Shown here in pieces: positions 9,343 to 64,000 of a stretch of DNA of 64,000 bases. Positions within the stretch are counted from its first letter, which is position 1; every line of letters starts with the position of its first letter. The notes beneath the pieces were generated by a model. The model worked only from the letters and a program-made list of their open reading frames with translations, did not search any database and had not been told where the DNA came from. Source of the stretch: Anthoceros angustus (taxonomy: Eukaryota > Plantae > Anthocerotophyta); contig MU008216.1 of assembly GCA_010909165.1 (NCBI GenBank), positions 62,001 to 126,000 of the forward strand, written 5' to 3'. The translations under genes were made by a program, and so were the position numbers.

Positions 9343-9448
9343 GACGAAAATCGATAAAACACGGATGCCTATATATGCCAAACATGCATGGATGCCATAT
9401 GCAGTAATGGTGTGGTGGACAATCGCCGGTTGGTGTTTTAGGCATGTG

Positions 9449-15869: not shown

Positions 15870-16310
15870 AGAGGTCATTGTAACAAGCAAGTTGAAAGAG
15901 GAATAGTGGAAGAGTATAAAATGGTGTGATAGGGGAGGTCCTTCTCACGGTCATGAAGGAGGAGGAGAAGTGAAAGAGTATAAAAGGGTGTGATAAGGGG
16001 CAATAAATAGGAGGGTGAGGTGAGAGGAGAGAGACCAAGTATTGTGTTAAGATGGTGGGAGAAGGAAGAGAAAGAATGGACCAACTTAACACCAAGCCAC
16101 CATAAAGTGTTGCAATTTGAAGTGGTACATGAAGTGAGAGACCAAGCATTGTGTTAGGATGGTGGGAGAAGGAAGAGAAAGAATGGACCAACTTAACACC
16201 AAGCCATCAAACCATGCTGGAAGTTGGAAGTGGTACATAAAATTGCAACACGACTTGTGGAACGCCAAATTTTGGGTCCACGGTTAGAAGAGGGGCAGAT
16301 GCCTCCTAGT
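15870..16310 (+). mobile_element. Transposon right terminus (subterminal TGTTGCAAT/ATTGCAACA motifs, short hairpin, CTAG-T end)
   Basis: Homologous to 20995-21208 and shares motifs with 38600-38850. Contains an internal ~108-bp duplication (about 16030 and 16138). Ends in AGGGGCAGATGCCTC-CTAG|T. Confidence 0.6.
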
Positions 16311-19908: not shown

Positions 19909-20991
19909 TGTTAGGAGGTAGGTTAAGAACCTTTTAAGAGGCCACCTACTTAAAACCGTAAGCAACCCCACCTACCCCACCGACTTAATTAATGCTAGGG
20001 GTTTGGGGAGCTCCTATAAGAGGGGAGGAGCTCCCATAATAAAATGTCATGCCTTGCCTCCCGACCAGGTGCTTGTCTTGCTACACAAGCGCGGCCGACC
20101 GTGAGGGTGCATGGTGTCCGTAGGGTCTTGAGGTGCGGTGACTGTGGTGAGGGGCGGGCCCAAACCTTTCTTTCCGGAGGTAGCACCGGGTAGTGTTCGA
20201 GCGGTGAGGGAGCGCATTGTGGTTGCGTGACGGCTGCATCGGGAAGACCCCTAGCAAAATCCAAAGACGCTGGGACGCCCAGCCAAATGTCCGCCTAGGT
20301 CCGTGAGGGCAATGCCCTATGATCTCGAGGCGCTGGCCGGGAGGCTGTGAGGGCGCCTATGATAGTTAGCTAGGAAGAGTGGAAGAGGTAGATTAGAGAA
20401 GAGAGGAGAAGAGAGGAGAAAAGAGAGAAAAGAGAAAAGAGAGAGAGAGAGAGAGAGGACGAGAGAGGAGCTAGAGAGGATAGGGAGCAAGAGAGGAGAA
20501 GGAAGGAGCAAGAGAGAAAAGAGAAAAGAGAGAAAAGAGAAGAGAGGAGGAAGAAACCTAGAAAAGAGAGGGAAGGTGAAATTTCAAGGGTCAGGACAAG
20601 AGCTTGAGGGGCGGCCCCAAATTTGTCACGAGAAGGGTCTTAGGGAGTGTAGGAACTGCTGGTGGGAGGATTGCCCATCAGACGGTGATTTGGGGTGGCC
20701 GCTGGCCGCATTGGGCGGTGCCTCTCGCGACGTAGGTCCGCGCCGACGGAGTCATCGCGGCGAGGGTAGTGTGACTTACCGAGGGTGGGTCACCGCGTGG
20801 CGCCTGTAGGAGGGGCGCTAGTCACGGCGCCTGTGACGGAGCCGGTGAGAGTCGAGAGGTCGTGAGGGCGCACCTCCATCCGCGGGAAGGGCTCCCCACT
20901 CCTTCGTGGGAACGAAACCCACTGCGAACCGTGATTAGGATAAGTGTGGCCTCTGGTCGAGGGTTCCGGGGTCCCGGAACCTCCCACCACA
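19909..20991 (+). repeat. Putative LTR (TG...CA) with internal GA-rich tract (about 20395-20575)
   Basis: TG/CA ends, preceding PPT-like tract and GA microsatellite. No partner LTR in the window. Confidence 0.4.
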
Positions 20992-42600: not shown

Positions 42601-42960
42601 TCCTCTTTGATGCTGATGATATTATTCTTTTCTCACATACCCCGAAGGGCTTGCAAAAGCAACTCCATGTTTTATCTAACTTTTGCAAAGCCAAGGGTCT
42701 CTTTGTCAATGTGTGCAAGACCAAGATCATGCGGTTCAAGTCATGGAATTACAAGGTAGAGTGCAAATCATGATGCTCAAGAGATGGAGATGGTCCACTC
42801 TTATATGTATCTCGGTGTCGCTATTTTTGGCCCCAAGTTCAACCAGACCTATTATGCCTCTTCTTGCGCTACTAAAGTGATGAGCTCTGTTTGTGCTTTA
42901 CACCATGCTTTCTACAAGATGAATATTCAGGATATCAACCTTTAGAAGCCGCTTTTAACA
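39341..42960 (+). mobile_element. Degenerate LINE, 5' part (ORF1 coiled-coil + RRM-like; ORF2 APE endonuclease + RT with an internal deletion)
   Basis: ORF1 fragments at 39906-40860 (AWRVGK...IVRF...VFVNPDLT). APE motifs SWNYNG (~40866), LSETH (~40956), G-LNA (~41317), STVDY (~41559). RT motifs VREGDPLFPNLFGLY (~42493), ADD (~42613), YMYLG (~42802). Confidence 0.88.
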
Positions 42961-44699
42961 ACGTCTATGTAGAAAGGGGTTTCTCCTGAAACCTCTTTTT
43001 GCACACGGACGTGGCGGACCCTTTTTTGCACTTGAAAAAATCCGCACTTTAATCAGCCTTTTTGGTATTTCTCTACAGACATGTCACCCGCAACATTTTG
43101 AATAATTGTTTTGATACACGTTATTTGAGATTGTAGATCGCAAGTACGTGGCAAAAACCTAAAGTCCCATTCTCGTTCGGCTTTTTCTTTCAAATTGGAC
43201 ATACTGCATGAAACTTATGCTTACATCTAAATGGTCTCAACACCGTATACACGTGTACGACGATACAAAGCGTTTAGAGTTTTTAGGGCTTGTTGCAGTG
43301 CAGTGCGCAAACTTGTTTGCGCACTTCATTCATACCAATCAATCCTAAGACTATACTCTCGCTTTGGGAATTTTACAGGACTGGGTTTTTTAGACATTGG
43401 GACAATAATATCTTCGTTGACCTGATGCTCTTGATCCGCGTGCAGTGCGAGAATGAGAGTGACATGCTCTACACTTGGAGCTGGGCCCACGCCAAACATC
43501 TCAAGATTCTAAAGATGCAAAAGGTTCTCACTACTAGTTCAAAGTTTTAACCACTAGAAAAAAGATGAGGGCTAAGTAAAGATAAGAACATATCTACGTT
43601 AGGGAGGTGCACAAAAAAGGTTGAAAACGTCGAAAGGAACCCTTTAAAATAAAATATATATATAAAAATACCAAAAAAATCACAAAAATATCAACATTTT
43701 AGGGCAAGTGTGCGCACTTGCCTCAAAGAATTTTAATATTTTTTAGGATTTTTTTGGGATTTTTTAGATTTTTTGCTCCTTTTTTCTTTGGATGAACCGT
43801 CTGTGAATGTACTAAGAGGCATGAACCATATGGGTTCATGCTCCTAGAACCTTCTTGACCTTGGGTGCATGCATTTGTGCGCGCACTTGGGCCCCTTGCC
43901 CCCTGATGCATGCACTTGTTCACAAAGCTGGGCCCCCCTGGCATGTTTGATGATAACCCGGTACTAGGTCACCGTCGAAAGAGACGGAAACACCGTAAAG
44001 GATAAAAAGGGGATTATAGGGTATTCTTCGTTGCATTAGGGTAGGATAGATATATGAGAGCGGTGTAGGTGTACCTCCGCCGATGTCTGCTACTTGTTAT
44101 TTTGTCGGGAGTTCTGGGGCACTAGCATGGTTTGGTGATACACTTTAGTACCATGTGGCTTGGGACACTTGGTTACTTTGCAAAGAATAGAGAGATGTGA
44201 GAGGGTGACTTTAAGTTTTCAGTAAAATAATATTTCACTATATTTTAGTTTCACTTTTATATACTTTTACGTTTGCTATTATTTACTTTAACTTACTTTA
44301 CTTTTACTTCAGATCTCTGTTTTTATCCGGTGGTAAGTCAACCCGCCGCTTACCCCAATTTCGACCTTACGCGTGGGCGCACTCTCTATTGCCATCCGGG
44401 CTCGGTGTTGAGTTGATCCTTCGCCACGAGCGGCTGGATGCAATCTCCTGCACTTGCTCGCCCACATCCGGCCGACAGTCGCACACACTCCGCGGGCTCA
44501 GAAGTTCGCGTGCTCGAGCTCTGGTTGTTGTAATCAACCCTTTGTGCTGCATTGTGAGCTATGTGGGGCTTCTTATAGGAGCCCTCCCTTCCCTTCTGTG
44601 CAGAACGCGGGCTCCCCACATGCAAGATCGAGCTGCGGCGGCTGGAATCAGCAGTTTTGTTTGTGCAGTTTTGAAGGTAATGTGCCTTGTGTGTGGCAA

Positions 44700-46320
44700 T
44701 CAGTGTTTTGCGGCTTCTGAGGCTTGCTTTACGCTCTTGTGTGCACATGTGCGAGTGCAGGGCTGTGAGATCTTTGTCGCGTGAGGTCTTGGCCTTGGAG
44801 TGGGTGCGTGCGGCTTCTCATTGTCTGTGGTGTCATCAAGAACTTGAGCCGGCTTAACGGTCTTGTGTGGACATGTGCATGCTCTAGGTCTTTGGGCGTG
44901 TGAGGGTGCTCCGATGGGTGCCAGTGCAGCTCCTTTGATCATTCCTTGTGTTCAATGTCACGGTGAAGGACTTGAGCACAGTAATGCTCTTGTGTGCACA
45001 TGTGCGAGTGCAGGGCTGTGAGATGTTGTGCGTGAGGGTGCTGGCCTTGGAGTGGGTGCCGGCGGCTCCTTGTCTATGGTGTCCTCGAAGAACTTGAGCC
45101 GGCTTAATGCAAATGTGTGCACATGTCTGCGGCTCAGCGTGTCTTTGGGCGTGTGAGGTGCTCTAGTGGGTGCAGTGCGGCTCATCATTCCTTGTGTGCA
45201 ATGTTACGGTGAAGGACTTGAGCTGAATAATGCTCTTGTGTGCACATGTGCAGTGCTAGGCTTGTGAGGTGGTGGCATTGTGATTTTGTTGGAGTGGGTG
45301 CCGATGTGCGGCTTCTCCTTGTGTCGATCTTGAGTGAAGAACTTGAGCACGCTGCGGTCTTGTGTGCACATGTGCGAGGTTACAGGTGGTCTTTGGGCGT
45401 GTGAGGTCTTGGCCTTGGAGTGGGTGCCGAGGTGCGGCTTCTCGATCACTCTGTGTGTGTCAGTGAAGAACTTGAGGCTTAATGCAAATGTGTGTGTGGC
45501 AATCGTGTTTTGCGAGGCTTGCTACGCTCTTGTGTGCACATGTGCGAGTGCAGGGCTGTGAGATCTTTGTGCGGCGTGAGGTCTTGGCCTTGGAGTGGGT
45601 GCAGTGCGGCTTCTCATTGTCTGTGGTGTCATCAAGAACTTGAGCACGGTCTTGTGTGGACATGTGCATGCTCTAGTGAGGTCTTTGGGCGTGTGAGGGT
45701 GCTCCGATGGGTGAGGTGCGGCTCCTTTGATCATTCCTTGTGTTCAATGTCACGGTGAAGGACTTGAGCGAGTAATGCTCTTGTGTGCACATGTGCGGGA
45801 TCGGGGCGTGAGATGTTGTGCGTGAGGTCTTGGCCTTGGAGTGGGTGTGCGGCTTCTCCTTGTCTATGGTGTCCAGAAGAACTTGAGCCGGCTTAACGGT
45901 CTTGTGTGGACATGTCAGCTCAGGGGGCGTGAGGTCTTGGGGCGTGTGAGGGTGCTCTAGTGGGTGCCGAGGTGCGGCTCCTTTGATCATTCCTTGTGTG
46001 CAATGTTACATGAAGGACTTGAGCTGAATAATGCTCTTGTGTGCACATGTGCACAGTGCTAGGCTTGTGAGGTGGTGGCATTGTGATTTTGTTGGAGTGG
46101 GTGCCGATGTCGCTTCTCCTTGTGTCTTGATGTGAGTGAAGAACTTGAGCACGCTGCGGTCTTGTGTGCACATGTCTGCGGGTTGGAGGTCTTTGGGCGT
46201 GTGAGGGTGCTGGCCTTGGAGTGGGTGCCGAGGTGCGGCTTCTCATTGTCTGTGGTGTCAAGAACTTGAGCGGCTTAATGCAAATGTGTGCACATTTGCA
46301 GGTATCTGGAGTGGGTGCTG
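44700..46320. repeat. Mosaic satellite built from shuffled modules (~125/250-bp periodicity)
   Basis: Recurrent modules GCTCTTGTGTGCACATGTGC, GGCCTTGGAGTGGGTG, CGGCTTCTC, AAGAACTTGAGC and GTCTTTGGGCGTGTGAGG. Confidence 0.92.
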
Positions 46321-46343
46321 AGGTGCTCAGGTGTTGGAGTGAC

Positions 46344-47039
46344 ATGGCTTCCTCTGATGAGGAGGAGACATTAGGCATCTCAAGGAATCAAAAGCGTGCC
46401 CTCAAAAACATGTTGAGCCGCTCACAGCGTGTGAGTCGAGCCTTGGAGGCAATGCCAAAGTGGAAGCGTTCCGCCTGGTCTTGGCATGAAGGAGACTACA
46501 ACTTGCGGGTGGAAGGAGTGGATGTTCGCCAAAGCAAGTTGCAGCAAGGTTTGAGGGAGGCAGTGGGCGGCCAGGACGTGCTTACCCTCTGGTTTGGGGT
46601 AACTGGAACAGGTAATGATGCTTATGGGTGGAAGGGATCGGATAAGTCGGACAAGGAGTGGAGAAACATCGGCGACTTGGTTTTCAAGATATAAAGCGAG
46701 TTAGTCTTGGGGCGGAAGATCCCTAGGTTGATGGCCATTGGCATCCTTGTTGAGAAAAAGCTGCACAGGTCTGTCAGTTGGCTGGCCTATGCACAGAAAA
46801 CTAATGAGGTAAAGGCCTCCAAGCACAAGAAATGTGAGGACATGGAGAAGGATAAGAAAGTGCACAAGGAGAAGGAGACCCCTGGATCACATGGCCCTAT
46901 GACGAGGTCACAGAGCAAGGGGAAGGGCAAGAAGGCTGTGTTGGGGCCAGTGTCCTCGGACTCTCGAGGACCAGTGATGAGGTTAGCAGTGGCCGTGGAG
47001 AGCAAGACCAAAGGAGGACTTGCATGCACGGGAGCGTGA
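46344..47039 (+). pseudogene. Transposon cargo ORF of unknown function, one in-frame stop (46692-46694)
   Basis: ORFs 46164-46694 and 46707-47039 share a frame and read as globular protein (MASSDEEE...GTGNDAYGW...VSWLAYAQKTN) followed by a Lys-rich tail. Confidence 0.55.
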
Positions 47040-47663
47040 GCAAGAATGTAATACCGAAGAGGAGGTTGATGTCATAGCTGCGGCTGAGGAGGACGGAAAC
47101 CATGCAGGTCCCGAAGCGGAGGATGTAGAAACGGAGACAGGTGCAATGTCAGGTGGGTTTTTCTTATAGTTTTAGATTCCCTGCGGTTTGTTCCCTGGTT
47201 TTCGCATCCATCACGTTTAACAGGTTTTGAGCTTGATTTATGTGAGCTTGCTCTTATTGATTGCATAGAGGGAGCAACAAGCTTGACAAGTTCTTTGCTG
47301 GTCTTGACTTAGCCTCAGTCTTGTAAAGTTCACTTACAAGCTTGCTAAGCGTATCTTTGTTTGTGTGAGCTTGGTGTTTTCGTGGATTCGAGATAGACTC
47401 TTGCGGTAGCTCAATTGTGAGGATTCTTCACGGAGGGAGGGAGGAGAGGGGCCTCATGGGCATTCCGACATCTATCCGTGCGGTTTGGCGGGGGGCCACT
47501 GGGCACATCAACACCTAGTGGTGTCTTGTCATGTCATGTTCGCATGTAGTGTGCTTGTCATGTCGTCATCCTTATGCGTCCGTCATGCATGGCGGGTGGT
47601 GATACGGTGGCGTCTTAGTGTGGGCGGTTTCTTGATCGTCGTGTATTCACGCGGTGGAAGTGA

Positions 47664-47938
47664 CATTTGTTCATCTTGTCATGTCACGTTACGTAAGCAT
47701 TTGTTCATCATCTCATCGTGTCACGTTGTGCACTGTGGGCATTTGTTCATCATCGTGTCACGTTGTACTGTAGGCATCTGCTTGTCATCATCTCACGTTG
47801 TGCACACTGGGCAATTGTTCATCTTGTCATCATGTCACTTTGTGCACTTGTGGGCATTTGTTCATCTGTCATCATGTCACGTTGTGCACTGGGCATTTGT
47901 TCATCATCATCATGTCACGTTGTGCACTGTGGGCATTT
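47664..47938. repeat. ~36-41-bp minisatellite x7
   Basis: Unit CATTTGTTCATC...TGTCACGTTGTGCACTGTGGG. Confidence 0.9.
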
Positions 47939-49779
47939 CTCCGCCGTCATGTTGTCATGGACATCTTAATGCTGATGCCATTGTTATTATGTGACATTGT
48001 GGACACATGTGCAGCTATTCATGCTGGCATTCTGTCACATTTTTGGACCTGTGGGCACTTTCTCATCTTGTCTTCTTGGGTGGCATGGTGGACATGTTAG
48101 CATTTCCTCAAGTTGTCGTGTGCACACTTGTTTTCGTGTGTAGGCTGGGATACGCTAGAGTTGCACACAAAGATCAAAACGCAACTGGTGGAAGACCTCA
48201 TCTCCTTGTCGAAGCAAGAGACCAGGCTGTCGGTGATTGCAAGCGAGGAGACAAGCAACCTTGCAGCAGCAAAAATTGCTCTAGGGAGCTCACAGCGCGC
48301 CCTTGGCGCAATCTGCTATAACAAGGAGGTGCGGTTATGTGGAGCGTCATCAACTTCATACTCACAGGCACCTAATTATGTCGTCCTTTGCGGTAGAAGA
48401 TGCACATGTTGCTCGTGTCCGTGTGCGTGCAACGGAGGCGGCGGACAATCGAGAGCCAACAACAAAAGCGTGACGCCCTCAGCACGTGTCAGCGGAGGAT
48501 TTACATGATGCCTTTGGCCGCATACATAGCTTGACGCTCAAGAAAGAAAGGACTCCTCAATGGATTCCAGCCCTTCTTACACTAGCGAATGTAGCCCTCC
48601 GGATCACGAAGTCTGCGTGTGCACAGTACTTCGTATATGCATGCCTTGTTTTGTGTCGAGATCTATTCCATGCATCTAAGCGCAATTGGTTTTGTGGTGC
48701 TATGTAGGGATTCGGATGCTATGACTTTGTTTTCCTCCCTTGTGGGCCTTTTTTCACGATGTATGCCTCTACCAACATGTCGGTCGGGTGACTGCCCCAA
48801 TCCTTGTTCTCTTCAAGTCCCCCGTGGTTGCAGGCCAAGGGTTGGCCATTCACTAGTGGAGTCCAACGGATGCACAGGAGCGTGACCCGAGCGAGTGGAC
48901 GAGCATTATCATGGTACTGCAGAATTCCACATCATGGAGCACCGTTTGGAAGAATTGTTGGGGGCGGTCGCAGATAGTGCCCTGGTGACTCACATAAGAA
49001 GGCGGTTCATGAGTCTCACAGTTAGTAGTGCTCTAAGGTTGTTGCTTTGCATGGAAAAGCTATATGGACCTTTGTGCTAGCAATTCGCTTGTCCCTAGGC
49101 ACATATAGTAGGCTGCCTGTCCTCGCTTGGCGGTGCGGCGTTGATCACACCACCACGTGGGCGGCCACCTATCCCAAAGCGATTCATTGCCCTGTTGGCC
49201 AATGCACAACTATGTCATGGAATCGCGGATCTGGTGGTCCCTGTGTCTCAAACCAGATTGAGTCCTGGTGAGGCACGCACTACAGTGCAATGTGGCCGCG
49301 TGTTGGCCCACTCATGTGGCGATCCAGTGATGTCATGTTTGGGGTTGGCTCCTTTGGTTGATGCAGATGCCTCTCACGTGGCGACTTCTTTGTTTTCAGC
49401 CCCGATTTTGATTCCACTCCATGGGTGGGTCAGTTGGTGGTGTGCCACAAGGTGGGCACCCATGTGTGGCCGTCGGTGAAGGAGGATACCGGTTTTTCTA
49501 CAGAGGATACCCGAGGATACCGTGCGGTGGACACCCACCTTGTGCATGATGATGAAACTAGGCATCAAGAATGACACACGGCTTGTGCGCAGACACGCAA
49601 CACTGTAGAACTTGTGCCGTCGTGTGGAAGTGACCACGGATGCAAGAAGATGAGGTGGAGGTGCCCGGCAAGGATGGGGAGGGCGTGACCACTATGGCGG
49701 TGGCTTTGCAGTGGTATGGATGTGGCCACTTGTCTTTGGTGTTCCAATGGCCGATTCTCTGCGGTGAAGCGGCCACTAT

Positions 49780-50271
49780 GTGTCGAGCCACCATGAAGTG
49801 GCTATTGTCATTCATAAGGATGCGGAGAAATCGCCACTTCAAGCATGCTACGAAGTGGTGGAGGTATCTGGTGGACGACGTCAGTCTTTGCGTAGAAAAG
49901 GCAAGCCGGAGCAGACTCCAGGAACTTTGAAACGGAAGGGTGCCTCCAAGTCCGGGAGACCAGGGCGTCCCAAGAAAGCTTCACAAAGTGCCATGGTGGA
50001 ACAACCGGCAGGTTTGGAATTTGGTGCAGCGTCCCCATGTGCAGGAGATAACTTCATGGTGCGTTCGAGGCCTGGTAATAAAGAGAAAGTCCTCTGGTAT
50101 GTATTGCGTTGCACAGAGCCCATGGTCACATTAGCTGTGCAAACTGAAGATCCAGCGTGGGGTGGTGAGATTTTTGCAGCAGGTGAAAAGGTTGTGAAAG
50201 GTTACTACTATGAGCGGTGCCCTCGACAAAGTGCCTACCGACTCGGATTCGAGCCACGTGGTGACCCATAA
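49780..50271 (+). pseudogene. Cargo gene fragment with a basic NLS/AT-hook-like stretch and a domain homologous to the transposase C-terminus
   Basis: KRKG...GRPGRPKK followed by GDNFMV...WYVLRCT...W...FAAGEKVVKGYYY, matching GDNFLV...FYLLTCT...W...FQAGEEVVVGQYY at 58370-58535 (-). Confidence 0.7.
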
Positions 50272-50479
50272 TGCTTGAGGCATCGACCACAAAGTTTCCA
50301 ATGGTAGCTATTCCGGGGCCAATGAGAAGAACAAGAACACTCCGACTTTGGCTCTCTGCTGGATATAGAACATGGTTGGATCAAGTTGTGGCGACATAGC
50401 GTAAAGGGAGGGGTCCTGCAAAATATACATGGGCTTGCTTTGTTCTTAGTCCACAGTGGTCACTTTTTGTCAAGGGTTG

Positions 50480-51030
50480 TAGACATGTGTAGGATGCTGT
50501 GGATGGACAGTATTAATGTGCAAGCATCCATAATTGGCATAGATGTGAATCCTTGCACTTTTGACAATCATGTTACTTGTGGGAGAATGCACTGGTTTTG
50601 TGGGTCCTGTGAAGCAATTCTCCGTTTGTAGTTCTTAGCGTTGGGAGGAAGCTACCGGTTGTAATTGCTCAATTACGAGCAAACCCGGACTTCGCGAGAA
50701 AGAGGGCCTCGGATGGTCTCTGAAACAATGCCTCGAGTCGATCCGTTCAATGCTCGTGGCGGACACATATACAATTCCAATGACACGATTAGTTTAATGA
50801 CACACGGCCATGTAGACATTTTGTGATGAACACACAACAAAGGCGGGCTCTGCAGAACCAGCTTTAACATGAAACCAAAGATCCAAAATATGCCACACCA
50901 CCGATTTCACATGCCACCCTCGTGGCCCAAAGTATGTAATGTACAATGCCACAAAACAAGCATCAAGGGATGCCTCCGCCATCCACCCATTGTCACACAA
51001 CCTATCTAGTGTCGTGGATGTGCGAGCCAG
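50480..51030 (-). pseudogene. Probable Ulp1/C48 SUMO-protease relic
   Basis: Ordered but frameshifted motifs: L..L...GWMAEASLDACFVAL (WLND..ID-like), HWNCICV, IERIDS and PQ...DC. Confidence 0.45.
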
Positions 51031-52725
51031 CCCGACGGAAGGAACTTGTTGCCCGACCTCGGGTGGCGCCCTCAATCTATCATCGCCATGATGTCCTCCT
51101 CGCTTGAGTCCCCGCGGCATGCGGATCGGTGCCTTCGCCGTCAACCCGACCACCTCCATGATGTGCGGCGTGCTGGCGGCGGTGGAAGGCACAGCATACA
51201 CACGATCTCGGACCTTCTTCCGATGGCTTGCGTGCCTTGGCGTTCCATTCGATGCAAGTAGTGTGCGCCAAGGTGACTAGTGACTTTCATCATTGACAAA
51301 TGGTGATACTCACCTCCGCCAAGAGGGTGCCACAGGCCAGCTTGCCTAATCCGGCTTGAAGATTCCATGTCCCTCCCCACACCAACCACTCCTCCCAAGT
51401 GCATGCTTCCATTGCATACAAGAGCGAAGTCCGCAACGTCGATCTCCACAAAGGACAAAGGCGGGCTAGCTTGCGTGGTCTCTGAGTGCTTGCCGGCTTT
51501 AAATTGCCAATGCCAGGAGGCCACTCGTGTGCATAAGGCCCGAAGGGTGGGTGACATGATTACTTTCGCTGAAACATGCCCAAGTGTAAGGAAAGCAAGG
51601 CCTGGATGGCCAATCACTGGCGATAGATTTTGAAAATTCGACCTCGATCCTTTCAACAGCTTGTCGAACCCGGCATAGGGGACCAAAGATTTGAGGCCAA
51701 CGTGACCAAGAGTCCGACATGACAAAGAGTGCATGGAGTCTGCTTTGTTTGCAATGATTGAAAATGGGAAAACTAGGGCCATTTACCCGGAGATAAAGAA
51801 TTTCACAAGCCGTGAGCAGTAGCGCGAAGCAATGTCTCAAACACATCCACAAAGTTCTTAACGCCGGCTTCATGCTTGCTATAGCCCACTACAACTTCTC
51901 GCAAGTTGCGGCTCTTCAAGGACAACACATGAACTTGAAACCACGGGGTATCGCCCACCACCGCTGGCGTCCTCTTTCGTGTTTTCAAACCTATTTGTTA
52001 TTGTGCCGTTAGAACCTTCAACATGTGGACAATCAACCTCTTGCTGGTCGGGGTTGCGCCAAGTCACCAGCCTCCCGAGTCATAAATGATTGTCTCAGTT
52101 TAGGTGATGCGCACCAATGTTTGAATTTTGTCCAGAACTCCTTTTGCACCTTGAACTCAAGCTAGTAACCTTGAATGTCATGCTCCAACTTGAATTTGCA
52201 CATAGGCGCAGTGCGGCTTATGCGTCCACGACACCCACCTCGGCTCTCGCTGCTCGGATCCTGCACCGGCGAGCCTTTCAGCAAATTCTAACGTGCCTTC
52301 ATTAGCATTCCTACACCCAATAGATACCCCAACTCCCAAGTCGGATCGGCTTTGAAAGATCCAAAGGATACAAGCTTGACATTCCAACCGGAGCGGAATC
52401 ACAACATGCAGCCCGTGCGGCCTTACAGAACCCATTGCGTTATCCTCATCAAGCACAAGCGTCATGATGAATCAAAGCATCCTCCTCACATTCAGCGTCT
52501 TGAGGGGCGGAAGGTGAGTAGACACTTCTGGCGGTCGCGGGCGCCTCCCTCCAACTCCCAGTTTGGTTTGCCATGGACCCTCCACGCCGGCCCCGGTGTG
52601 AATGAAGAGTCCCCCGTGCAACACCGCACTAACAACGCCGCACGCACTAACACTGTCCCGTCAAAATAAGCCGGTAAGAAGGATTGTGAGAAAGCGGCAC
52701 GTCTCGGGAGTAACCTAACAAGCGG

Positions 52726-52994
52726 CCCACATCACCACATCCCCACATCACCACATCCCCATCCCCACATCCCACATCCCCATCACATCCCACATCCCAC
52801 ATCCCCACATCCCCATCCCCATCCTCCCCACATCCCCACATCCCCACATCCCCACATCCCACATCCCACATCATCCCACATCATCCCACATCCCCACATC
52901 CCCCCATCATCCCCACATCCCACATCCCACATCCCCATCATCCCCACATCATCCCCACATCCCCACATACCCACATACCACATACCCACATACC
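52726..52994. repeat. (CCCCACAT/CCCACAT)n simple repeat
   Basis: About 270 bp of 7-8-mer units, grading to CCCACATAC at the right end. Confidence 0.95.
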
Positions 52995-53049
52995 CTGAGT
53001 TTTATCAAACTTGAGCTCCCACTCCCGACCGCATCTATTAGGGGCGAAG

Positions 53050-53596
53050 CAGGATATCGACAAAGCAGCGTTATAGCACGAATTTGGGTCACAAGTCTTG
53101 AGCCAAAAACATTTTGTAAGCGGTACCTGCAAAACTGTCTAGTGTGACAACATAGTCTAGTAAACTCAGAAGCAGGTGACAACATAGTGTGACAACATAG
53201 CGGCCCGGAGCAATGTGAAAATAGAAACCTGGGGCACGACACTTGCATTAATTCGTTGTCCTCCTCGCGATGCAGTGTTCATCCAATCGGGTTGTGCTCA
53301 TCTCAAGGCTGAGAATGAACATGATCTATCGAGAACAGCGAGATATTAGCAAAAGCAGCGCGTTATAGCACGAATTTGGGTCACAAGTCTTGAGCCAAAA
53401 ACATTTTGTGAAGCAGTGCCTGACCTTGCAAAGCTATAGTGTGACAACATAGTGTAGTAAACTCGGCGAAGCAGTGACAACATAGTAGATCGATACGCGG
53501 CCGAACAATGTGAAAATAGCAACCGGGCACGGCGGCTTGCATTAATTCGTTCTCCGCGATGCAGTGTTGATCGAATCGGGTTGTGCTCATCTCAAG
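53050..53596. repeat. ~292-bp tandem duplication with indels
   Basis: GCGTTATAGCACGAATTTGGGTCACAAGTCTTGAGCCAAAAACATTTTGT at about 53068 and 53360; both copies end AATCGGGTTGTGCTCATCTCAAG. Confidence 0.9.
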
Positions 53597-54256
53597 ACCA
53601 CCAGTTGATCATGAACCACGAACTGACTTCCACCGGTAGTACTCACCTTCCTCGGTTGCTTTCATAGACATAGGCGGTGACTTGTTCACAGGCTTGTGGT
53701 TAGCCTATATGGACTTCTCCATCGTGCCCATGTGGTGCCATTGTGAGCTTGCATGTCGAACAATTTGAGGGTGAAAATAGCATTCCTCCGGATCAGCCAA
53801 AGCTATACACAGACTGGGCAGACTGTGGCGCGACTTTCGCGATGCCCGGAGCGCGACAATCCGTGTCGTTGTAGGAAGAAGTCCGTTCCCAAGGAATGAT
53901 AGGCTCCGTTTGCGTTTGGTGATTCCTACCGCTTGCGCTCGTTCGGCCTCAACGCACATACTCTAACTACTCTAGCGTTCCGTCTGCCGGTATGGCCAAG
54001 CGTTTGAGACCCGTTCGCGTCGTATCGTTCATTAATCACTCACACATCATCCTTTCCTCTCTCCCCTCACGCTACACTCCTCGGTCTTAGAAAAAGCGGG
54101 TTACAGTCGGACCTCCTCCGTCGTTCGCCTCTCCGTCCGACTCTGCCGCCCTCCGGAGTTCCTCCGGCTCACCGTTCGATCCGTTCGGTCTTTGGGCGGC
54201 TCGGGCGAGCACGGGTCACCGATCACCTTCCACTGCACACACCACAACACGTTAGG

Positions 54257-57200
54257 TGTCACGGGACCACAGTCAATCTCCCGGGTGCCGTGCACCTTTC
54301 GGTGACTCGGGACTCACGTTAGCAAGAAGACACACAAAGGTGCAGAGCGGCATCAACACCAAGAAGATGATTTATTGGGGCCTTAGCCCTCTTATACTCG
54401 CCGAAGGTCGGCCTTTATTACACCTCTATTACGGTGAGGGCCATTTCGGGGTGCCTAACCAGCCGCCTACTACCCTATTCCGCCTATCGCCGTCGGTGGT
54501 GGGGGTGGGATAGCCCCTCATTCCTTCTTGGCACCGGCCCAAAGCGAGCCACTGCGGCGCCTGTCGGATGATCGCGGACCCCTTCCTCTTCAGTGCAGCC
54601 GAGGCGCCACGGCGCGGCGACAGCGGCGATCACCACCAAGTCTTCCTCGTCCTCCCTCTTCTCTCTCGGGCCCTGCGCGTGGGCCCTCAAGGGTTGGATC
54701 TGCTGGGGTTGGTGGTGTGGCTCTCCCCACTCCCAGTTTGGACCTCGGGACCTGTCTGACTCGGTCCGGACCTCTAGGTCAGTCTTCCCTCTGAGTCCGG
54801 TCTCACTGGGCCGGCCTTCTTTAGTCAGGTCCTCGGGGCCGGGGCCTGAGGTCCGGTCTTGGACCCAACCCCACAGGGTCGGACCTCGGGGTCGGACTCG
54901 TCACTGAGTCTGGATCCCTAAGTCGGACTTCCTTGAGGCGGACCTCGGGATCGGCCTTTCCTCAGTCCGGACAAAGTCAGGACCCTCGACTCTGGGCATG
55001 CCTCCTCGCCGGGCTCACGGGTTCATCCTGAGCCCTCCCTTGGTTCCCGAATGCCCGGTTGCACCTTTCCTTCCTCTCAAGATCCTCCTCGTCCTTCCAT
55101 GCGAGGTCTTCTTACCTCGGTGTGGCGCCTTCCTCCTCCCGGTTCCTCCAGCTGCTCTCCCGCGCTGCTGCTGCCGTCGTCAAGCAGGCTCCTAGGACTC
55201 CAGCGGTTGTCTTGTCCCGGGTCCGTCCTCTCGCTCCTCCTTCCATCCCGGAGTCCACCCTCACCTGGGGTGGCGCGGGACCTCGAGCCTTGAGGGCTCT
55301 GCGTGGTAGTAAGGCGGTCGGAATCGACTTGAATCGCCTCCTCTACATGAGCCGGGCACCGTACTCCCTCCTCAGGTGCTCGTGGCCCAGGATCGCCCAC
55401 TGCTTGGCTTTGTCTCGTGGCCAAGCTTACGGTAGGCGGACTCCCTTGAGGCCGTCAAGGCTGCCTCAGTTACCTCTTGCAACCTTGCTGCTCGGCGTTC
55501 TCCTCCTCCGTCGTTGTTCCGGCTCAGCCATTTGCGGGCCATGGGTGAGCTCCTTGCTTCCTGGCCGGACGAGCAAGCTGTACCTTTCCTCCGTGCTTTC
55601 CTCCCTTCTCTATTCTTTCCGGAGGTCCTCCACTTCCTTCTCCAGGCGGTATCCCGTCAGGCTCACGGCTTCCGCCACATCCTGCTGCAACCTTGCGGCG
55701 TCGAACTCCTTGCACGCCGCTTTATTCTCCTCCGTCTTCAAGCGGGCTGGGCGTTCCACCTCTCGCTCGAAGTCTTGGATTCTCGTTGAGAACCTGCTGC
55801 TCCGATGCATCTTGGGTTGCAACTCCAAAGTGTCCTGTTGTCCTCCGGCTCCTGCGCCCCCTTCTACCTCCTGCGTGCACAGGGTCCCCAATCTCCCGGG
55901 TCTGGCCTCAGCCTCCTCACGGCTCGGCCGTGCTTGCTCCATGACCACTTGCTCGGCCTTGATTGGCGGCTCTCGGCCGCCTCCTCCACGGTTCGATCAC
56001 GCATAGTGATCGCGATCGGCCCGTGGCCTCCGCCTCCTTGGCCACCTTCACGAGCCTCTCGGCTTGGCTCTGGTCGTCAGGCTGCCTCGCGAGATCCGCG
56101 CCCGTTCGCTTGGGCGTCCTCGCTTCTGCTGCGCTCGCCCCTCTGCTGCGGAGGTCCTCCCGCGCTTGGGCCTCCTTGGCTGCCCGGTATTCCTCGGTGA
56201 AGGAATTTAGTCCGGTCCTTGCGGATGGACGGACCTCCCTCTCCGCCTCCGGCGTTTTCCTTCCTCAATCCTGCCCGAGCTTGGCCTTCCTTCTCGCCTC
56301 ACTGGGCTCCCTCCAGCTCACGGAGGCACCATGCGCCTCGGGTGGCTTCCACCTCCAGGCCTTCTCGGCCATCCCAGACCCCGGCATACCGTCCATGGCG
56401 GTGGCAGGACCGCCGTGTTTCCTCCACGGCCTGAGTGAGGCTCCCACAAAGTCCGTGCGGGGCCGGCATCTCCAGTCCGTCAAGGACCTCCATACCGCAT
56501 CCGGAGCAAGTCGGGGGGGTTCTCGGACAATCGGGACCCTTGGGTCACGAGTCTTTGGCTCGGGCTTCCCCTCCTTGGCCCTTTTGGCGAGCTCCTTCTC
56601 GCCCTTTTCCTCCACAGGGCTCGGCGGAGGTGATGGAGTCAGGAGCCGCCCTTTGCCCCTTCACATCGGCGGGGCGGCTCTGGATCTGCTGCCGGTGTCC
56701 TCCTGCTCACAGGCGGCGTCCTTCGCCCTCCTTCTTTCCTTCCTCGCTTCTTGCCACTCGTCGGCGGGGAAGAAATCTTGCACCAGGGGTGCAGCGTTGG
56801 TAATAGTGGTCTTGCGTTTCTTGGCTCTCTCACAGTCGGCGGGGCTCCTCGGTAGGAGTGATGGCCGGTGGCTGCAGGGTCACTTCTCTTGGTGCACGGT
56901 TGGGGCACGGAAGGAGGGAGGCGGGGTGCTTCCATACTTCCACAGGTGGTGAGGGGTCCGTTCACGTATGGAGTCAGGAATCCTCGATCGTCCTCCTCCA
57001 GTCCGTTTGGTTTTCGGCCGGCCTCCTCCCTCGGCGCCCTTGCCGCTCCACTTCCGGGGCCTCAGTCCTTTCGGGCGCTCGCTCAAGCTCTCCTTCCTTG
57101 AGGAGTTGAAATGCCCCATACATGGATCGGGTATGGGGCGGCCAGAATGGCGAGGCTTCTCGCTCTGAGCTTGCGAGCCTCACAGCTAAAGGCGAAGATA

Positions 57201-58352
57201 ATCCTTCCCAGTCCGCCCTCTTCCCAGCTGCGTAGCGTGCGGGAACACCAATAGATTATCACCAAGGTGATCCACCTTGGTAGTAGGTTCGATGGGCGAT
57301 GATCCGGGCCACCACGACTCGGCCATCCAGCAGGTCGGATATCGACCAACCGTTGGTGGTCGTTGCGTCGAGCCTTAGCATCGGCTGCTGGCCTATCTTC
57401 CCTTCGCCTTGAGGGGCTCGGCACCCTCCCCTCTTCCTCCTTGGGGCGGTTGTAGGCCGCCTTGACCTCAAGGTCCATCGCCTTGGGTCCTCTCGGAGGT
57501 TCTTGGACCGCACCTCCTTGTTGTGCCTTGACATCTTCCGGGCAAACTCCCGGACGGAGTGACCTCAAATGTCGGACCATTTGGAACACGTCCAAATGCC
57601 ACTCCTGCACCAATTCTCCGCTTCACGGGCGAGCCCAAAGTCCGGATAGCGCGGGTCACAATGTTGCGCTCCACAAGGTTCCATGGCTCCCAAACTTCCG
57701 GGCTTTTGGGTGCCATCGCCTTCTTCTCCCTTGGTTCTTGGCCGCTTGGGAGGCTGGCAGCACGTTGCGCCTTCTTCGCGCGTTGCGCTCCGAGCCTCAG
57801 CGGTGAGCAGCGGCGTCGAGTGTCCACGAGATACCGAGCGGTTGCGGGCGCAAGATCGCGAGGTCTCGGTGCCTTGACAGCTTCTTCGCGACCACGCCGA
57901 GTAATGCCGGGCGGGCGCCTCTTCCTGTCCGTGGCGAGTGCATGGCTTACTGCGGCCTCTGGCCAGCGCTACGGCCTTACTCCGCGTACTGCGGCCCCTC
58001 GCGCGCGCGGCCGCGGGCGTGAATACACCCTGCGGCCTGCAGGGTTACAGTCTGACCAGCTGCATGCCGTCCTCCACTCGGGGTCGTCCGTGGCGTCGCC
58101 TGGTCGTCCACGGCCCAACTTCTAAGTTACTTTCCTGGCGTACTGCACGGTCACAGGTGGGTCGGACTTGCACTTATGGCGCCTACCATAGTAGGTCAGA
58201 TGCGTTCCTCACTCCGGTCGGAGTATACTCGAGTGCCGTCCGAGTGCTGCTCCATCTTATTTCCCCTTTTCCGCCTCATTTTATCCTTCACTCCTACAAA
58301 AAAACAAAACCCTACCTATTTTCTAACCCCCAAGGGAAGTCCGTAGTCCACA
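54257..58352 (-). mobile_element. Nested gypsy (Tat-like) 3' fragment: LTR-like end, PPT-like GGGGCTA, tandem 3'-UTR motifs, broken coiled-coil ORF
   Basis: TGTCACGGG at 54257 and TAGCCCCTCA (minus strand TGAGGGGCTA) at 54511. GGACCTCGGG/GTCGGAC repeats at 54740-54990. Minus-strand E/R/A-rich fragments (QDFEREVER...LEKEVEDLRKE). GC-rich block ending abruptly at the transposase C-terminus. Confidence 0.55.
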
Positions 58353-61300
58353 CAAATGCTTTTCCAACATATAGTATTGTCCAACAACCACCTCCTCCCC
58401 AGCCTGGAATTCTCTTTTACTCCAAGGGCAATACCGAGACTCCAATAACGTGTGCTTAGCCTTAGTGCAAGTCAACAGGTAAAAATCCAGCCCTTCATCT
58501 GCAGGGTCTGCCAAGACAAGGAAGTTATCTCCAACTTCCAAGATATCTGCCATCTCTGAGACATCAACAACATCATCATCCTCAGCTGCTTCAATTGTTG
58601 GAAGTGCATGATCAGCAATCATCAGTGCAGGGACTTGCTGGTCAACCGCTTGTCGTGTTTGTCTGGGGCCAGCAGCCTGTCCATGAGGTGTGATTCGCAC
58701 TAACCTCCAAAAGCCAGCATGAGGCACCATTTCACACGCTGAATGGTTGCTCTCCATACACTCTGCACAGAAACATGCAAGGCTCCGCATTCGCAATTGC
58801 GTGGGGTCATGCATGTCACAACCATACAGGCTGTGCATTTGCTTGGATCCAGGTATGGGGTCACAACCAAATTTGTTTCGGCGGTTTACCTCTGTCTTTC
58901 CAATGAGCCAAAAACTTCGGTGAACTGCATGATCAGCACTTGCATAAGAGCTGGCTGCACCAGCAGAGATGTTTTGCAGGTACTCCACCACATCTGCAGC
59001 ATTTTCCATCCTGCCAGCAGTAGGGGACGACTCTGCAGCTCGCAGAGCACGCTTCAAGATGGCACCTGCACCATCGTGCTCCCCCTTCCCGTGCCCACTT
59101 CCAAAATAAGACCAAAGCATGTTGCACCCACCTGTGATGCTAGGATACCGAGCAATGAAGTAGCTAGGCGACACGCTTTGAATTGGCTAGCCCCATCGAC
59201 CCGGCACCGGTGTTCTCGAGGTTGAGGAATCCGCATCCTGCATCCCACTTGCTTTTTGTAAGCATGTTGCACAAATAGAGTGTCATGGACCATGTCATCG
59301 CTAATATAAAAGTGATAGTACTTCTCAATTGATGCGCGGTCCTCTGCATCAACGGCCATTTGTAAAAACCAACACCAAAATAGTAACACAGTCGTTACGC
59401 GATTGCATGGATTGAATCTCATTCTGGACCCCAAATGCGTAGTTCTGAGCAAAATCGATCACTGAAACCACAACATCCTGTGGGAACCATTCGAGACAAT
59501 GTCTGAACTCTATCCCCTGCCACCGCTGGATGTAATCATGAAACAGAAACTCCTTCAGCCTTACCTTCAGATACTCCACAAACACGGAAGGATGTGTTTC
59601 CCTAAACACTAGTTTGATCCTTTTCTTGTCGTTGCCATCAGCCTCCTTTCCGACTACCTGATATTGAAAACAGCGCCACTTAAGAACATCATTTGCCTGA
59701 ATATCCAAACATGTCTCTGAAGGGCAGAAGGGAAGTGTGTTGACACCACACCTGTCACATGTTCCTAGCAAGCATGCGGGGAATGCGGGCAGCATCCTCA
59801 CCCTTTGCACAAAGAACACGCTCACATAGTGTCTGGTGAAGCCAAACAAGTGGAGGCGTTACAATGAAGCTCTTGAGCCAAAGGATGAGCACACACGGCA
59901 AGAACAACATGCCACGGGTGAACCACAGGCTGCCCGGAGGTTATTGAAGGCATCTTTAAGGAACGCCATTTCCACATGGTGCAAGCGGTGATTGCGCTCT
60001 TGCAAGCTCTTAACAAAGAACGGCTTCAACTTCTCGAATGACCGTTGCCCAACTTGTATTTCCGGGTGTTCTTGACAGAAGCGAAGGTAGAACTCTGTCT
60101 GCACATGTCATAGAAGAACACACTAATCAGCCTAAGAAACCCTGTTGGTAAAAGCAACGCCAAACCCACAATGGAGGCCACATGGAGTCGCCAGATCATA
60201 TGTGTGCATAGGACATTGGGGTCAAGCATGCAAGCTTGGGTCCCAGCTGACGTAACCACGAAGCAAAACAATAGCACAAACATGTAACACACTCAGTTCC
60301 AGCTGTCTCTGTTTGGCAGCATAGCAAGGTCACCACTTAGTTGCCCAACAAGAAGTCACCCTACGGTTGTATGAGGAAGGGAAACACAAGCAGGTTAGAA
60401 GGACCCAAGACACGTCCTTCAGATCAGCAACAACCTTCACACAAATCTCGAAACCTAGCAAGCCAAACTTCCACATTACGTCCTTGAGAAGAACAACAGC
60501 CTACAATCAACACTTCAAACTCAGCAAGTCAGACTTCCACACATACCTGTGACATGTCCAGAAAGTGCGTGATATGTTTGATGAACGTTTTCGGTGCTAT
60601 TCGCAACCGCTTGGTATCTTTTGTGTTGGATGAAGGACGGGAAGCTGATTCCCAAAAGTGGACGATGGTGGCCTTAACATGTGGCGAAAGGATGTCAGAT
60701 CTTGATCTCCTTCCATCACCCAACGGATCATCACGAGGCATGCCCTCCCGCCTTGTGCTTAGGGCTCGATGGATCGCCTCCTGCGACTCCAATGTGGTGG
60801 GAAAGCGTAGCAACAAGGTGATTGTCTTGGAGATCTTGAGATAAAATGACGTTGAGCAGGTGTTCCTTGCTGCAAATGGTCTCCAACTTGAAGCGCCTTC
60901 AAGTTTGTGCAAGCCTCACGCACATTCTTCAACAACAATGCTCCTAGTTGGATCTCTTTTGCATCCTTTGTAGCCCTTGGCCTATACAACTTGAGAAGTG
61001 GTAGGTGACTAAACACCTCCAAAATGTCTCTCGACATTCTGCTGTATATCGGTGGTAAGGCATAAAAGCGATTGGCTAGTGTCGAGCCACTTCTTGCTTG
61101 CGCCGAGCATTCCCTAATACGGTGGCTGCAGAGCCCTGCCGCTCTCTATGCTTCACGCATGTTGATGTTTTGGCCCTCTCCTTCAACTCTACGGAAGGAG
61201 CATCCTCCCCTACTCCTTGGCCTGGAGGACGTGTCTCCTCGTTTAACATGCTCTGTCCACCTCCAAGATGTATCCCTACCCTTCTTCCTCCACACCACGG

Positions 61301-61560
61301 ACACGACTTCACGTGAAGCACCTTGGTATTAGTGCTTCCACTTTGACGACGCGTTTGGGCTGCGCCCATCGACTCCGTTGTTGGGAAGGTGGCCGAACCA
61401 TAACACCGTCCCAAAACAAGAGTTTGAAGGCACCACCTCCAACGCCACGGCACTATCCACCGTATTTGAAGCAACACACCGCCCCGCACTATCCACCAAC
61501 CCGGTAGCGGACCTACTTGCAACTTGTAGCGCCGTCCGAACTGATCTCCTTCCACCATTC
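58353..61560 (-). pseudogene. Sola-like DDD (RNase H-fold) transposase with introns and frameshifts
   Basis: VSVIDFAQNY (~59440-59470), YISDDMVHD (~59285-59310), DGASQFK (~59178-59198), YFGSGHGKGEHDGAGAILKR (~59050-59110). Cys clusters CLLGTCDRCG and LACFCAEC. GT-AG intron at about 60099-60546. The C-terminus is cut by the LTR fragment and the 5' boundary is approximate. Confidence 0.8.
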
Positions 61561-62439
61561 ACATGTAGCCACGGAGCTTGTCACGATTACCTAGCCTCTG
61601 AGTTCAAGTTGAGTTCTATCTGATACCTAGGTCATTTGCGGCTAGCGGTATGCGTACTCCGATCCGCTTGCACCACATAATGATATTCAACCTAAACCAT
61701 AAATGATTTTTAAACTCGAGCATTTGAAGGCGGTAGCGTGGGCGGGCCCGTTCCCTGGCCACGGGTTCGTGAAATGAAGCGGCAAAAGGCCAGCTATGTG
61801 GGAACATTGTCCTTAAACAAGTTGAATTTTTTAAGCATATTTTAATATACCATTATTTATTAAATTTTAATCCTAGATAAAAATAGACATTACCATAACA
61901 TTTAAAAAAAATCAGACAAGTTGGAAAAGAAATGAATTTTTCAAAATTGTAGACATTGCGTGAGGACAAAATAAGAGCGTTTCAACCGTTTCTAACTAAA
62001 GTGAGCACCTAACCATGCACGCACCCTCGACACATCCTCGGACCTCCAAAAGGACATGTTTCCCCATTAGAAGATCATTTTTCGCATTCTTTTTGCAGTG
62101 CATGCACAAGTTTGCGCATAAGCGTTATTTAGGCGCACACTTATGCGCGCTAGGCCCCTGGTATACAAAACATACAAAACCACGCAAAATGCGAAACTAC
62201 GGACATGGCGAAATTATGGAACAATGAGGTCATTGACCCTTCATCACAACTAAATCGCCATGAACACAGTACAAGGCGCCACGGCGTGTAAATGACTCGA
62301 TAGGAAGTGGTCGGATGAGAATGCCGAAACGATGGATGAACACCTACAAAACCAACAAAACCAAACCAACTTTAGTTTCCGGCGAAATAGGGTTGGGATT
62401 TTTCCCAAACCCTTTTGATGGGAGAAACCCCTTTCTACA

Positions 62440-63480
62440 CGTATTTTTCTCCACGTTGTTATTCCCTCTTGCCTTGTATGGTATTTGGGTTTGAATCTCT
62501 CCCCATCCTCTTGGGGAAAAGGTTCAAGCTTCCTTTATTCGAGCTCACATCACTGTAAGTGCTCGACCCGCTTACCTAGCCTCCTTTACGAATTTGCCGC
62601 CTTTCACCTTGAACTTGAAAGCCTTTTTGCCTGCCCTCTTTCCTCTACCGCCTTTAGCTTCTTGACATTGTCAACCCCGATCTTTCCCCTTACCACCTCC
62701 TTCCCTGCAGGTCTTTCCGTTCGCTTTGGCTCAATACTGATTCCCAGGCTTCCTTTTGTTGGCTCTCTCAAGCTGCCGATTGGTTGAAAAGGCTCGAGTT
62801 TGAAACTTTAAGACTCCCAGCTTGGCCTACTCCCTACTCCCAGCTTGCCCTCTCTCATATCCCCTCAACCACCACATCCGAAGGGACCTTAAATTGAGAT
62901 ACCTTCGTCTCATCCGGTCTCCTCTCTATTCTATCCCTCCTCTCACACCCGGACTACGGTTATACAAGGAGGAGTTTCGTGTCAATCCCCTTTGGTTTTC
63001 TTGCCACCTTGCATCTTAGATCTCCTCTCTTCAAACTCCGTACACTCATTGGTCAGTGCATTAGCTCCCATCACCTCCGGATCGAAACTAAGCTAGTTCG
63101 GGCGCCTCCTTAAGAAAACGGATTTCTGAGCTTTGCTCCTTGGACCACGAATATGAATCACATTTTCTCTTCTATTGTCCGCCTATCTTTGATATTCGAG
63201 CTCATTACACTCTTCTTTTCGAGTGTCTTTGGTTTTCCTCATGTAGATTTTTCTTTTCACATTTTAAACTTTACGGACTCTCTCTAAGCTTTTGAACATC
63301 GACATGCTTTGTTGAACTTGTTATTGGTTTCACTTCCTTTTTTTTCCTTTTTCATCTCAAGCGATTCTTGTCTTTCTAGTTCAAACATACGTATGAATAC
63401 TCGATTTTTTCCCTCTTTCACGTTGTACTATCCCTGTCCTGTGATGGCCCTTTCATCTTTAGCGGATGTAAATAAAATTG
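62440..63480 (+). mobile_element. Degenerate LINE, 3' part (continuation of 39341-42960)
   Basis: FSTLLFPLALYG..W (post-RT motif), SHHLRIET (~63065) and a degenerate E.HFLF.C knuckle (~63155). 3' UTR ends TGTGATGGCC...GTAAATAAAATT. Confidence 0.82.
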
Positions 63481-63496
63481 TTTGTAAATAAACTTG

Positions 63497-64000
63497 GACG
63501 ACGTTTGGCTGCTGCCCATCGACTCCGTTGTTGGGAAGGTGACCGAACCATAGCACCGTCCCAAAAACAGCCAACAGTTTGAAGGCACCACCTCCAACGC
63601 CACGGCACTATCCACCGTATTTGAAGCAACACACCGCCCCGTGACTATCCACCAACCTGGGCATGGACCTACTTGCAACTTGTAGCGCCCGTCAACTGAT
63701 CCGCTCCTTCCACCATGTCACGCACATGTAGCCACAGAGCTTGTCACGATTAATGCCTAGCCTCGAGTTCAAGTTGAGTTCTGATTACCTAGGTCATTTG
63801 CCGGCTGGCGGTATGCACGCCCAGTCTCCGCTTGCACCTGTAAATGATATTCAACCCTAAACCATAAATCCGACCAGGATTTTTAAACCCGTAGCATTTC
63901 GAAGGCAGCGCGTGGGCGGGCCCGTTCCTTGGCCACGGGTTCGTGAAATGAAGCGGCAAAAGGCCAGCTATGTGGGGACATTGTCCTTAAACAAGTTGGA
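63497..64000 (+). repeat. Indel-rich duplicate of 61345-61826 (offset ~2152 bp), running off the window
   Basis: GCCCATCGACTCCGTTGTTGGGAAGGTG...GGCCACGGGTTCGTGAAATGAAGCGGCAAAAGGCCAGCTATGTGGG is collinear in both places. Confidence 0.92.

Follow-up and report, generated by a model that had tools for sequence, protein, structure and literature searches.

In the genome of Anthoceros angustus (Anthocerotophyta), a 19.5-kb DNA transposon of the Sola2 superfamily appears to have inserted into the second open reading frame (ORF2) of a long interspersed nuclear element (LINE), and we put the probability of this reading at roughly 78%. The insertion lies in a 64-kb stretch of contig MU008216.1 (positions 62,001 to 126,000 of the forward strand); this whole stretch is called the window below, and coordinates are counted from its first letter. 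The element carries perfect 19-bp inverted repeats and the relic of a transposase, and the copy in the window is most likely dead. This is a new host record for Sola2 and not a new kind of element: it places Sola2 in a land-plant genome and indicates that its members can be as large as about 20 kb in such a host. Typical Sola2 elements are a few kb long. The superfamily is said to have been described by Bao, Jurka and Kapitonov in 2009 (Repbase).

Inverted repeats in a split LINE

A first-pass annotation of this DNA had reported perfect 19-bp inverted repeats, and they are indeed present: TGTAGAAAGGGGTTTCTCC lies at 42968-42986 on the plus strand, and its exact reverse complement lies at 62421-62439. 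Two matches to TGTAGAAAGGGGTTTCTCC were found in 0 of 100 shuffles, and any perfect 19-bp inverted repeat arose in just 1 of 300 first-order Markov simulations of the 21.5-kb region. The window holds no further match to TGTAGAAAGGGGTTTCTCC with three or fewer mismatches. The likeness between the two ends stops at 19 bp, with no outward extension. The repeats and their surroundings are as follows.

40300-42964, plus strand: 5' part of the host LINE, with an ORF1-like region, an endonuclease and a reverse transcriptase with an FDADD box; interrupted by stops and frameshifts (from translations)
42961-42964: candidate left copy of the target-site duplication, ACGT, in the same codon phase as the right-hand ACGT
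42965-42967: CTA, three extra bases between the candidate duplication and the perfect repeat (flank analysis)
42968-42986, plus strand: left arm of the perfect 19-bp terminal inverted repeat (sequence match)
62421-62439, minus strand: right arm of the perfect 19-bp terminal inverted repeat (sequence match)
62440-62452: CGTATTTTTCTCC, thirteen extra bases between the repeat and the candidate right duplication (flank analysis)
62453-62456: candidate right copy of the target-site duplication, ACGT
62457-63480, plus strand: remaining 3' portion of this LINE ORF2 as far as its 3' end, with ..LLFPLALYG.., EKVQASFIRAHI and the Cys/His knuckle (from translations)

The earlier proposal that the element splits a LINE was also borne out. 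Left of the element, the plus strand encodes a LINE reverse transcriptase that reads ..GDPLFPNLF.. and ..ILILFDADDIILFS.., with the FDADD box near 42600, and then ..YLGVAIFGPKF..KMNIQDINL*KPLLTTS (asterisks are stop codons). Right of the element, the plus strand continues with VFFSTLLFPLALYGIWV*ISPHPLGEKVQASFIRAHI.., followed by ..FPLALYG.., EKVQASFIRAHI and a C-terminal Cys/His knuckle (CSLDHEYESHFLFYCP) near 63150. These are the two halves of one ORF2, both on the plus strand, and the host LINE is itself decayed.

The flanks suggest that ACGT was duplicated at insertion, because deleting 42965-62456 both restores the frame of the LINE (..MNIQDINL*KPLLTTLLFPLALYGIWV.., with the ACG codon in the same phase on both sides) and joins the flanks as a perfect 14-bp palindrome, TAACAACGTTGTTA. 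A duplication of 4 bp is also what has been reported for Sola2 (PMC3627910). The flanks share a 9-bp inverted match (TAACAACGT at 42956-42964 and ACGTTGTTA at 62453-62461) whose score was equalled in 3 of 2000 shuffles, while a longer duplication in direct orientation, of roughly 13-16 bp, was not significant (reached in 1570 of 2000 shuffles). The likely target would be the palindrome TAACA-ACGT-TGTTA, with the central ACGT duplicated, and intact copies of the LINE are expected to read ...CTTTTAACAACGTTGTTATTCCC... across the site. The first-pass annotation had placed the limits at 42968-62439; given the flanks, we infer that the outer limits are most likely 42965-62452 (19,488 bp).

Several observations weigh against this account. 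The four bases that adjoin the perfect repeats differ (TCTA versus CGTA), so there is no clean 4-bp duplication flush with the repeats; instead, the repeats sit 3 nt (CTA) and 13 nt (CGTATTTTTCTCC) inside the ACGT copies. If these extra bases are counted in, the outermost sequences of 42965-62452 do not pair as inverted repeats, and they are also unlike the GAG/GAA..CTC/TTC termini of dictyostelid Sola2. Furthermore, a homologue search with the LINE piece 42760-42942 returned no matches, so the palindromic target is a reconstruction. Also, one copy with these termini is known here, and the mobility of the family is unproven. It is possible that small later indels at an end of this decayed element account for the extra bases. 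The right end (62421-62452) reads GGAGAAA...TTTCTCC, which means that the last 7 nt of the 13 extra bases CGTATTTTTCTCC match the inner end of the terminal repeat in inverted form.

The poor fit between the repeats and the ACGT copies is one reason to ask if the inverted repeat arose by chance or belongs to some other superfamily, such as hAT with an 8-bp duplication (ACGTCTAT / ACGTATTT), in which case the Sola2 relic would be a passenger. If the repeat is taken as 18 bp, then the adjoining 8-mers match at 6 of 8 positions. However, inverted repeats that are perfect over 19 bp seldom occur, one LINE ORF is broken just where the two arms lie, and there is no transposase domain of hAT or of another such superfamily. 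The Sola2 transposase is the sole one inside the element, and its 5' end faces one terminus. We consider this explanation highly improbable.

Among metagenome contigs, TGTAGAAAGGGGTTTCTCC had one match, in a GC-rich bacterial sequence, which we judged to be due to chance. TGTAGAAAGGGGTTTCTCC was not found in locus L002 of the liverwort Riccia sorocarpa, which is the sole fetched locus that was searched for the 19-mer.

The transposase and its relatives

The transposase relic consists of five open pieces on the minus strand, identified from their ORFs and a family profile.

58326-60915, minus strand: Sola2 transposase relic, in pieces 60532-60915, 59862-60107, 59352-59858, 59057-59458 and 58326-59186

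The first-pass annotation had pointed to three aspartate motifs in this region. All three are present on the minus strand: DFAQNY at 59456-59439, DGASQFK at 59197-59177, and GHGKGEHDG at 59096-59070. They are spread over three overlapping ORFs and not in a single reading frame, since the frame of motifs 1 and 3 differs from that of motif 2. Therefore, two frameshifts bracket about 65 codons of the middle part.

Judging from its motifs, the transposase belongs to Sola2, which is clade E.12 of Majorek et al. 2014 (PMC3985635). We identified Sola2 by four blocks of the RNase H-like catalytic core with its three aspartates (DDD), namely DFxENY..QxEIQSxHW, SDDxxHD, DGCxxQ[YF]K and F..[ST]HGKG..D. 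The window has VIDFAQNYAFGVQNEIQS, FYISDDMVHD, DGASQFK and SYFGSGHGKG (in longer form, VIDFAQNYAFGVQNEIQSMQS, FYISDDMVHD, VDGASQFKA and SYFGSGHGKGEHDG). For comparison, Sola2-1_HM from Hydra (Repbase) reads GDFAENYTFVVQDEIQSYHW, FISDDITHD, FTDGCAGQYKN and FFATSHG (Majorek et al. 2014, PMC3985635, supplementary file 5). All four blocks match, by eye on the published alignment rather than by a computed phylogeny. The element also resembles Sola2-1_HM in its short terminal inverted repeats, and it may have a 4-bp duplication (ACGT). It differs in its land-plant host, in its length of 19.5 kb, in having repeats that are not flush with the candidate duplication, and in being broken in this copy.

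Other assignments were considered and rejected. The blocks of Sola1-1_AP (FDLEKV / SDNCGGQNRN / ERGHTQS) and of Sola3-1_HM (KDYCQK / SDNASSYH / NEPCRGKD) are unlike the motifs in the window, which sets aside Sola1 and Sola3. Neither the transposase pieces nor the interior segments have any Pfam domain match to hAT, CACTA, MULE or PIF-Harbinger. This agrees with the original suggestion of a Sola-like DDD enzyme that is distinct from those superfamilies. In fact, no Pfam family matches any piece of the transposase, so annotation that is based on Pfam would leave the whole 19.5 kb unclassified.

An exhaustive phmmer search with a 283-amino-acid piece found 690 relatives, mostly fragments; those with names come from the liverwort Riccia sorocarpa, a Klebsormidium transcript, molluscs and a nemertean. 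A family profile that we built from 21 members finds one catalytic core in the window, at 58326-59858 on the minus strand (E = 4e-58, 3e-23 and 2e-5 for three pieces), and no second one. In an AlphaFold model of the Klebsormidium homologue (P0011; predicted local distance difference test score, or pLDDT, of 87), residues 1-197 align to the catalytic cores of retroviral integrases (Z of about 10 and root-mean-square deviation of 2.9-3.4 Å over 143-149 residues). The modelled homologue has the expected RNase H-like fold.

We read the element as a cut-and-paste DNA transposon. Its transposase belongs to a family that has an RNase H-like DDD core with the aspartates in DFAxNY, in DGxxxQFK and in GHGKGxxDG, then a Cys-rich insert, and lastly the BAH-like domain at the C-terminus. 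Such an enzyme would presumably work as other DDD/E enzymes do: having bound to the terminal inverted repeats, it would cut out the element, and it would use a 4-bp staggered cut for integration. The idea that a transposase of this kind acted on these repeats and split the LINE is supported.

The copy in the window is most likely dead, because the core has two frameshifts, conserved residues are changed (HW to QS, and W.DG to RVDG), the N-terminal region is interrupted (there are about 425 extra bp between 60107 and 60532 compared to the colinear Riccia gene), and the C-terminal domain (58368-58583) ends after two thirds of its length. Against this, the first frameshift is at a run of five T and could be an assembly error, as could some of the other indels in the transposase. 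This copy carries nothing that would alter the present picture of transposition.

Three Sola2 loci from the liverwort Riccia sorocarpa (L002, L004 and L005) are 96-98% identical to each other, are largely open, and are annotated only as hypothetical proteins. The transposase in the window is colinear with theirs, with the same blocks and a BAH-like C-terminus, at about 25-50% identity depending on the segment. Two of the Riccia copies have at least 11.5 kb in common (96% identity), a stretch that takes in downstream ORFs, among them a coiled coil. Unlike the transposase, these downstream ORFs have no counterpart in the window (no similarity by tblastn or phmmer). The long Riccia ORFs, at 14459-16927 (plus strand) and 19385-20437 (minus strand) of L005 and at the equivalent places in L004, may be accessory genes; two long Riccia ORFs are without a Pfam match and are alike in pattern.

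Dictyostelids have Sola2-Fanzor chimeras, which combine a Sola2 transposase with extra sequence (PMC3627910), and the element in the window is similar in that respect. Dictyostelid Sola2 elements are large, and the PPa copies share a 5' stretch of 7 kb; they have terminal repeats of 12-21 bp, a range that includes the 19 bp seen here, and 4-bp duplications of the form A..T (AWWT) (PMC3627910). The candidate duplication here, ACGT, is of the A..T form as well. In contrast to these chimeras, the window has no Fanzor/TnpB gene, and the dictyostelid termini start with GAA or GAG, versus TGTAG here.

A BAH-like domain in two copies

The last 140 or so residues of the transposase family are predicted to fold as a beta-barrel (pLDDT 89). 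The top matches in Foldseek were to EBS, polybromo, BAHCC1, AIPP3 and SHL, with probabilities of 0.95-1.0 but E-values of 0.015-0.1. An independent structure search against 48,161 chains gave AIPP3 (Z = 7.7), Rsc2 (7.3), EBS (7.0), the first BAH domain of DNMT1 (6.8) and ORC1 (6.6); the matches to BAH structures had Z of 6.0-7.7 over about 90 residues. Because these Z values are middling and the domain has no sequence match to BAH in Pfam, we call it BAH-like instead of BAH. Clusters from molluscs and haptophytes in the ESM Atlas hold a domain with the same predicted shape (TM scores of 0.73-0.77).

A hidden Markov model (HMM) of the BAH-like domain, built without sequences from the window, has two matches in the window. 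One is the C-terminus of the transposase (E = 2e-21) and the other lies on the opposite strand.

50029-50238, plus strand: second, diverged BAH-like copy, first two thirds of the domain (HMM, E = 8.5e-18)

Both copies lack the last third of the domain: the match to the minus-strand copy ends at position 91 of the profile and that to the plus-strand copy at position 100. In Riccia, a single in-frame stop splits the BAH-like domain at about position 92 of the HMM (L004 12049-12963 and L005 12121-13035), just where the minus-strand match in the window breaks off, and the frame then continues through the remainder of the domain.

The plus-strand copy is the sole candidate for a second gene in the element, and it is a fragment of 70 amino acids. 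It could be what is left of an accessory gene, or else a piece that strayed in from another Sola2 element. In the former case, the element would descend from a two-gene Sola2 lineage with a convergent gene on the plus strand, the product of which had a paralogue of the BAH-like domain at its end, and the large size of the element would be partly intrinsic. The significance of the match is consistent with this; so is the low identity between the two copies (about 28%), which implies that they did not arise by recent internal duplication. The family profile finds no transposase core upstream of the plus-strand copy. Instead, it is preceded by GRPGRPKK, which is similar to an AT-hook. The stretch of at least 11.5 kb that Riccia copies have in common, downstream ORFs included, also fits a lineage that is large by nature. 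On the other hand, just 70 or so amino acids are recognisable in the window, with no SWIM or RING-H2 motif (motif searches gave only chance matches in repeats), no upstream exon, and no homologue (a search with the plus-strand ORF 49768-50268 had no matches). The downstream ORFs of Riccia are not similar to the interior of the element, and none of the three Riccia loci, nor locus L001, has a second BAH-like copy. We think that a two-gene ancestry is unlikely.

A broader version of this idea is that plant Sola2 may form a large multi-gene lineage that combines a BAH-like transposase with a convergent AT-hook gene with a paralogous domain, both directed to the same chromatin feature, and that the element in the window is a decayed member. 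We view this as quite unlikely. If it were true, then it would imply chromatin-guided integration or self-regulation. The predicted BAH-like domain, found twice on opposite strands, hints at chromatin-directed targeting.

The interior and the size of the element

The first-pass annotation described a large, uncharacterised family that carries cargo, with several further ORFs and a nested fragment of a long terminal repeat (LTR) element. Our results do not bear this out. Sola2 is a described superfamily, giant Sola elements were published in 2025 (PMC12477816), and the interior has no recognisable cargo gene. We scanned the 139 stop-free segments of at least 70 amino acids that lie between the repeats against Pfam, and none of them belonged to a family; the sole match was spurious (a ribosomal family, E = 0.0044). 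In particular, none of these segments matched reverse transcriptase, integrase, gag, ParB (PF02195) or DNA methyltransferase (PF01555), and there is no pair of LTRs inside the element. Pfam searches with the ten largest interior ORFs also gave no match. A motif search for ParB and for the methyltransferase motif DPPY gave only chance matches in repeat arrays, with no DPPY-type motif in a plausible context. The two segments that were compared to the ESM Atlas (an ORF of the GC-rich block and the ORF at 46149-46691) had no usable match, and scans of 42000-64000 for Rfam families and for tRNAs were negative.

About 15 kb lies between the stop of the transposase and the left end of the element. 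No gene is recognisable in this stretch, which is made up of tandem arrays, a GC-rich block and other sequence. The repeats and compositional features are as follows.

44688-46300: array of tandem sub-repeats of about 125/250 bp, 1.6 kb (repeat analysis)
47697-47938: 42-bp tandem array (repeat analysis)
52726-53596: CCCACATC microsatellite-like array (52726-52995) and a two-copy tandem repeat of about 290 bp (53062-53596) (repeat analysis)
53800-58200: GC-rich block, 58-70% GC in 200-bp steps, with a pyrimidine-rich plus strand (composition)
61340-61824: segment that is repeated outside the element at 63492-64000, with 86% identity (self-comparison)

The size of the element comes from tandem arrays and the GC-rich block and not from recognisable cargo. 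The GC-rich block (4.4 kb) has no domain matches and its long ORFs are without support. A point against this view is that the interior could hide genes that are diverged or spliced. A frame of 295 codons with one stop, at 46149-47036 on the plus strand, begins in a tandem array and has no match in Pfam or the Atlas.

A small Sola2 element could also have been swollen by later nested insertions (the GC-rich block, the repeat at 61340-61824, and the BAH-like fragment as a stray from another Sola2 copy), in which case neither its size nor its content would be a trait of the family. The composition of the GC-rich block changes sharply at about 58200, another copy of the segment at 61340-61824, with a sharp edge, lies outside the element, and the transposase has the extra 425 bp or so relative to Riccia. 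Nested insertions are also usual in giant DNA transposons (PMC12477816). However, terminal repeats, duplications and coding domains are lacking from all of the candidate inserts, and from one copy, nesting is indistinguishable from original content. We regard swelling by nested insertions as a serious possibility, at somewhat less than even odds.

Giant elements of this sort are known from the brown alga Ectocarpus, where KDZ, EnSpm and Sola-1 elements of 10-30 kb commonly have nested repeats, pseudogenised transposases and accessory genes (PMC12477816, 2025). The element in the window is like these giants in being of the Sola type and over 19 kb. The Ectocarpus element Sola1-1_Ec32 is 21.5 kb and carries a ParB-like/DNA methyltransferase gene (PMC12477816). 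In contrast, the element in the window belongs to Sola2 rather than to Sola1, and no remnant of either domain was seen among its 139 segments.

The 61340-61824 segment lies in the 5' region of the element, and its outside copy (63492-64000) begins just past the 3' end of the LINE, has the same orientation and a sharp left edge, and runs off the end of the window. These segments (at least 500 bp) could represent a second, partial copy of the element or some other repeat family. Should 63492-64000 belong to the 5' region of another copy, then we expect the terminus GGAGAAACCCCTTTCTACA to lie about 615 bp past position 64000.

Two further features lie elsewhere in the window. ORFs at 3693-4490 on the minus strand have features of a CACTA/En-Spm-type transposase (..VMHVEKNNAEAIWHTL..), which explains a stray match to GHGK at 4415 and has no relation to the Sola2 element. 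A unit of about 2 kb is present in three tandem copies at 9448-15108, with 86-93% identity.

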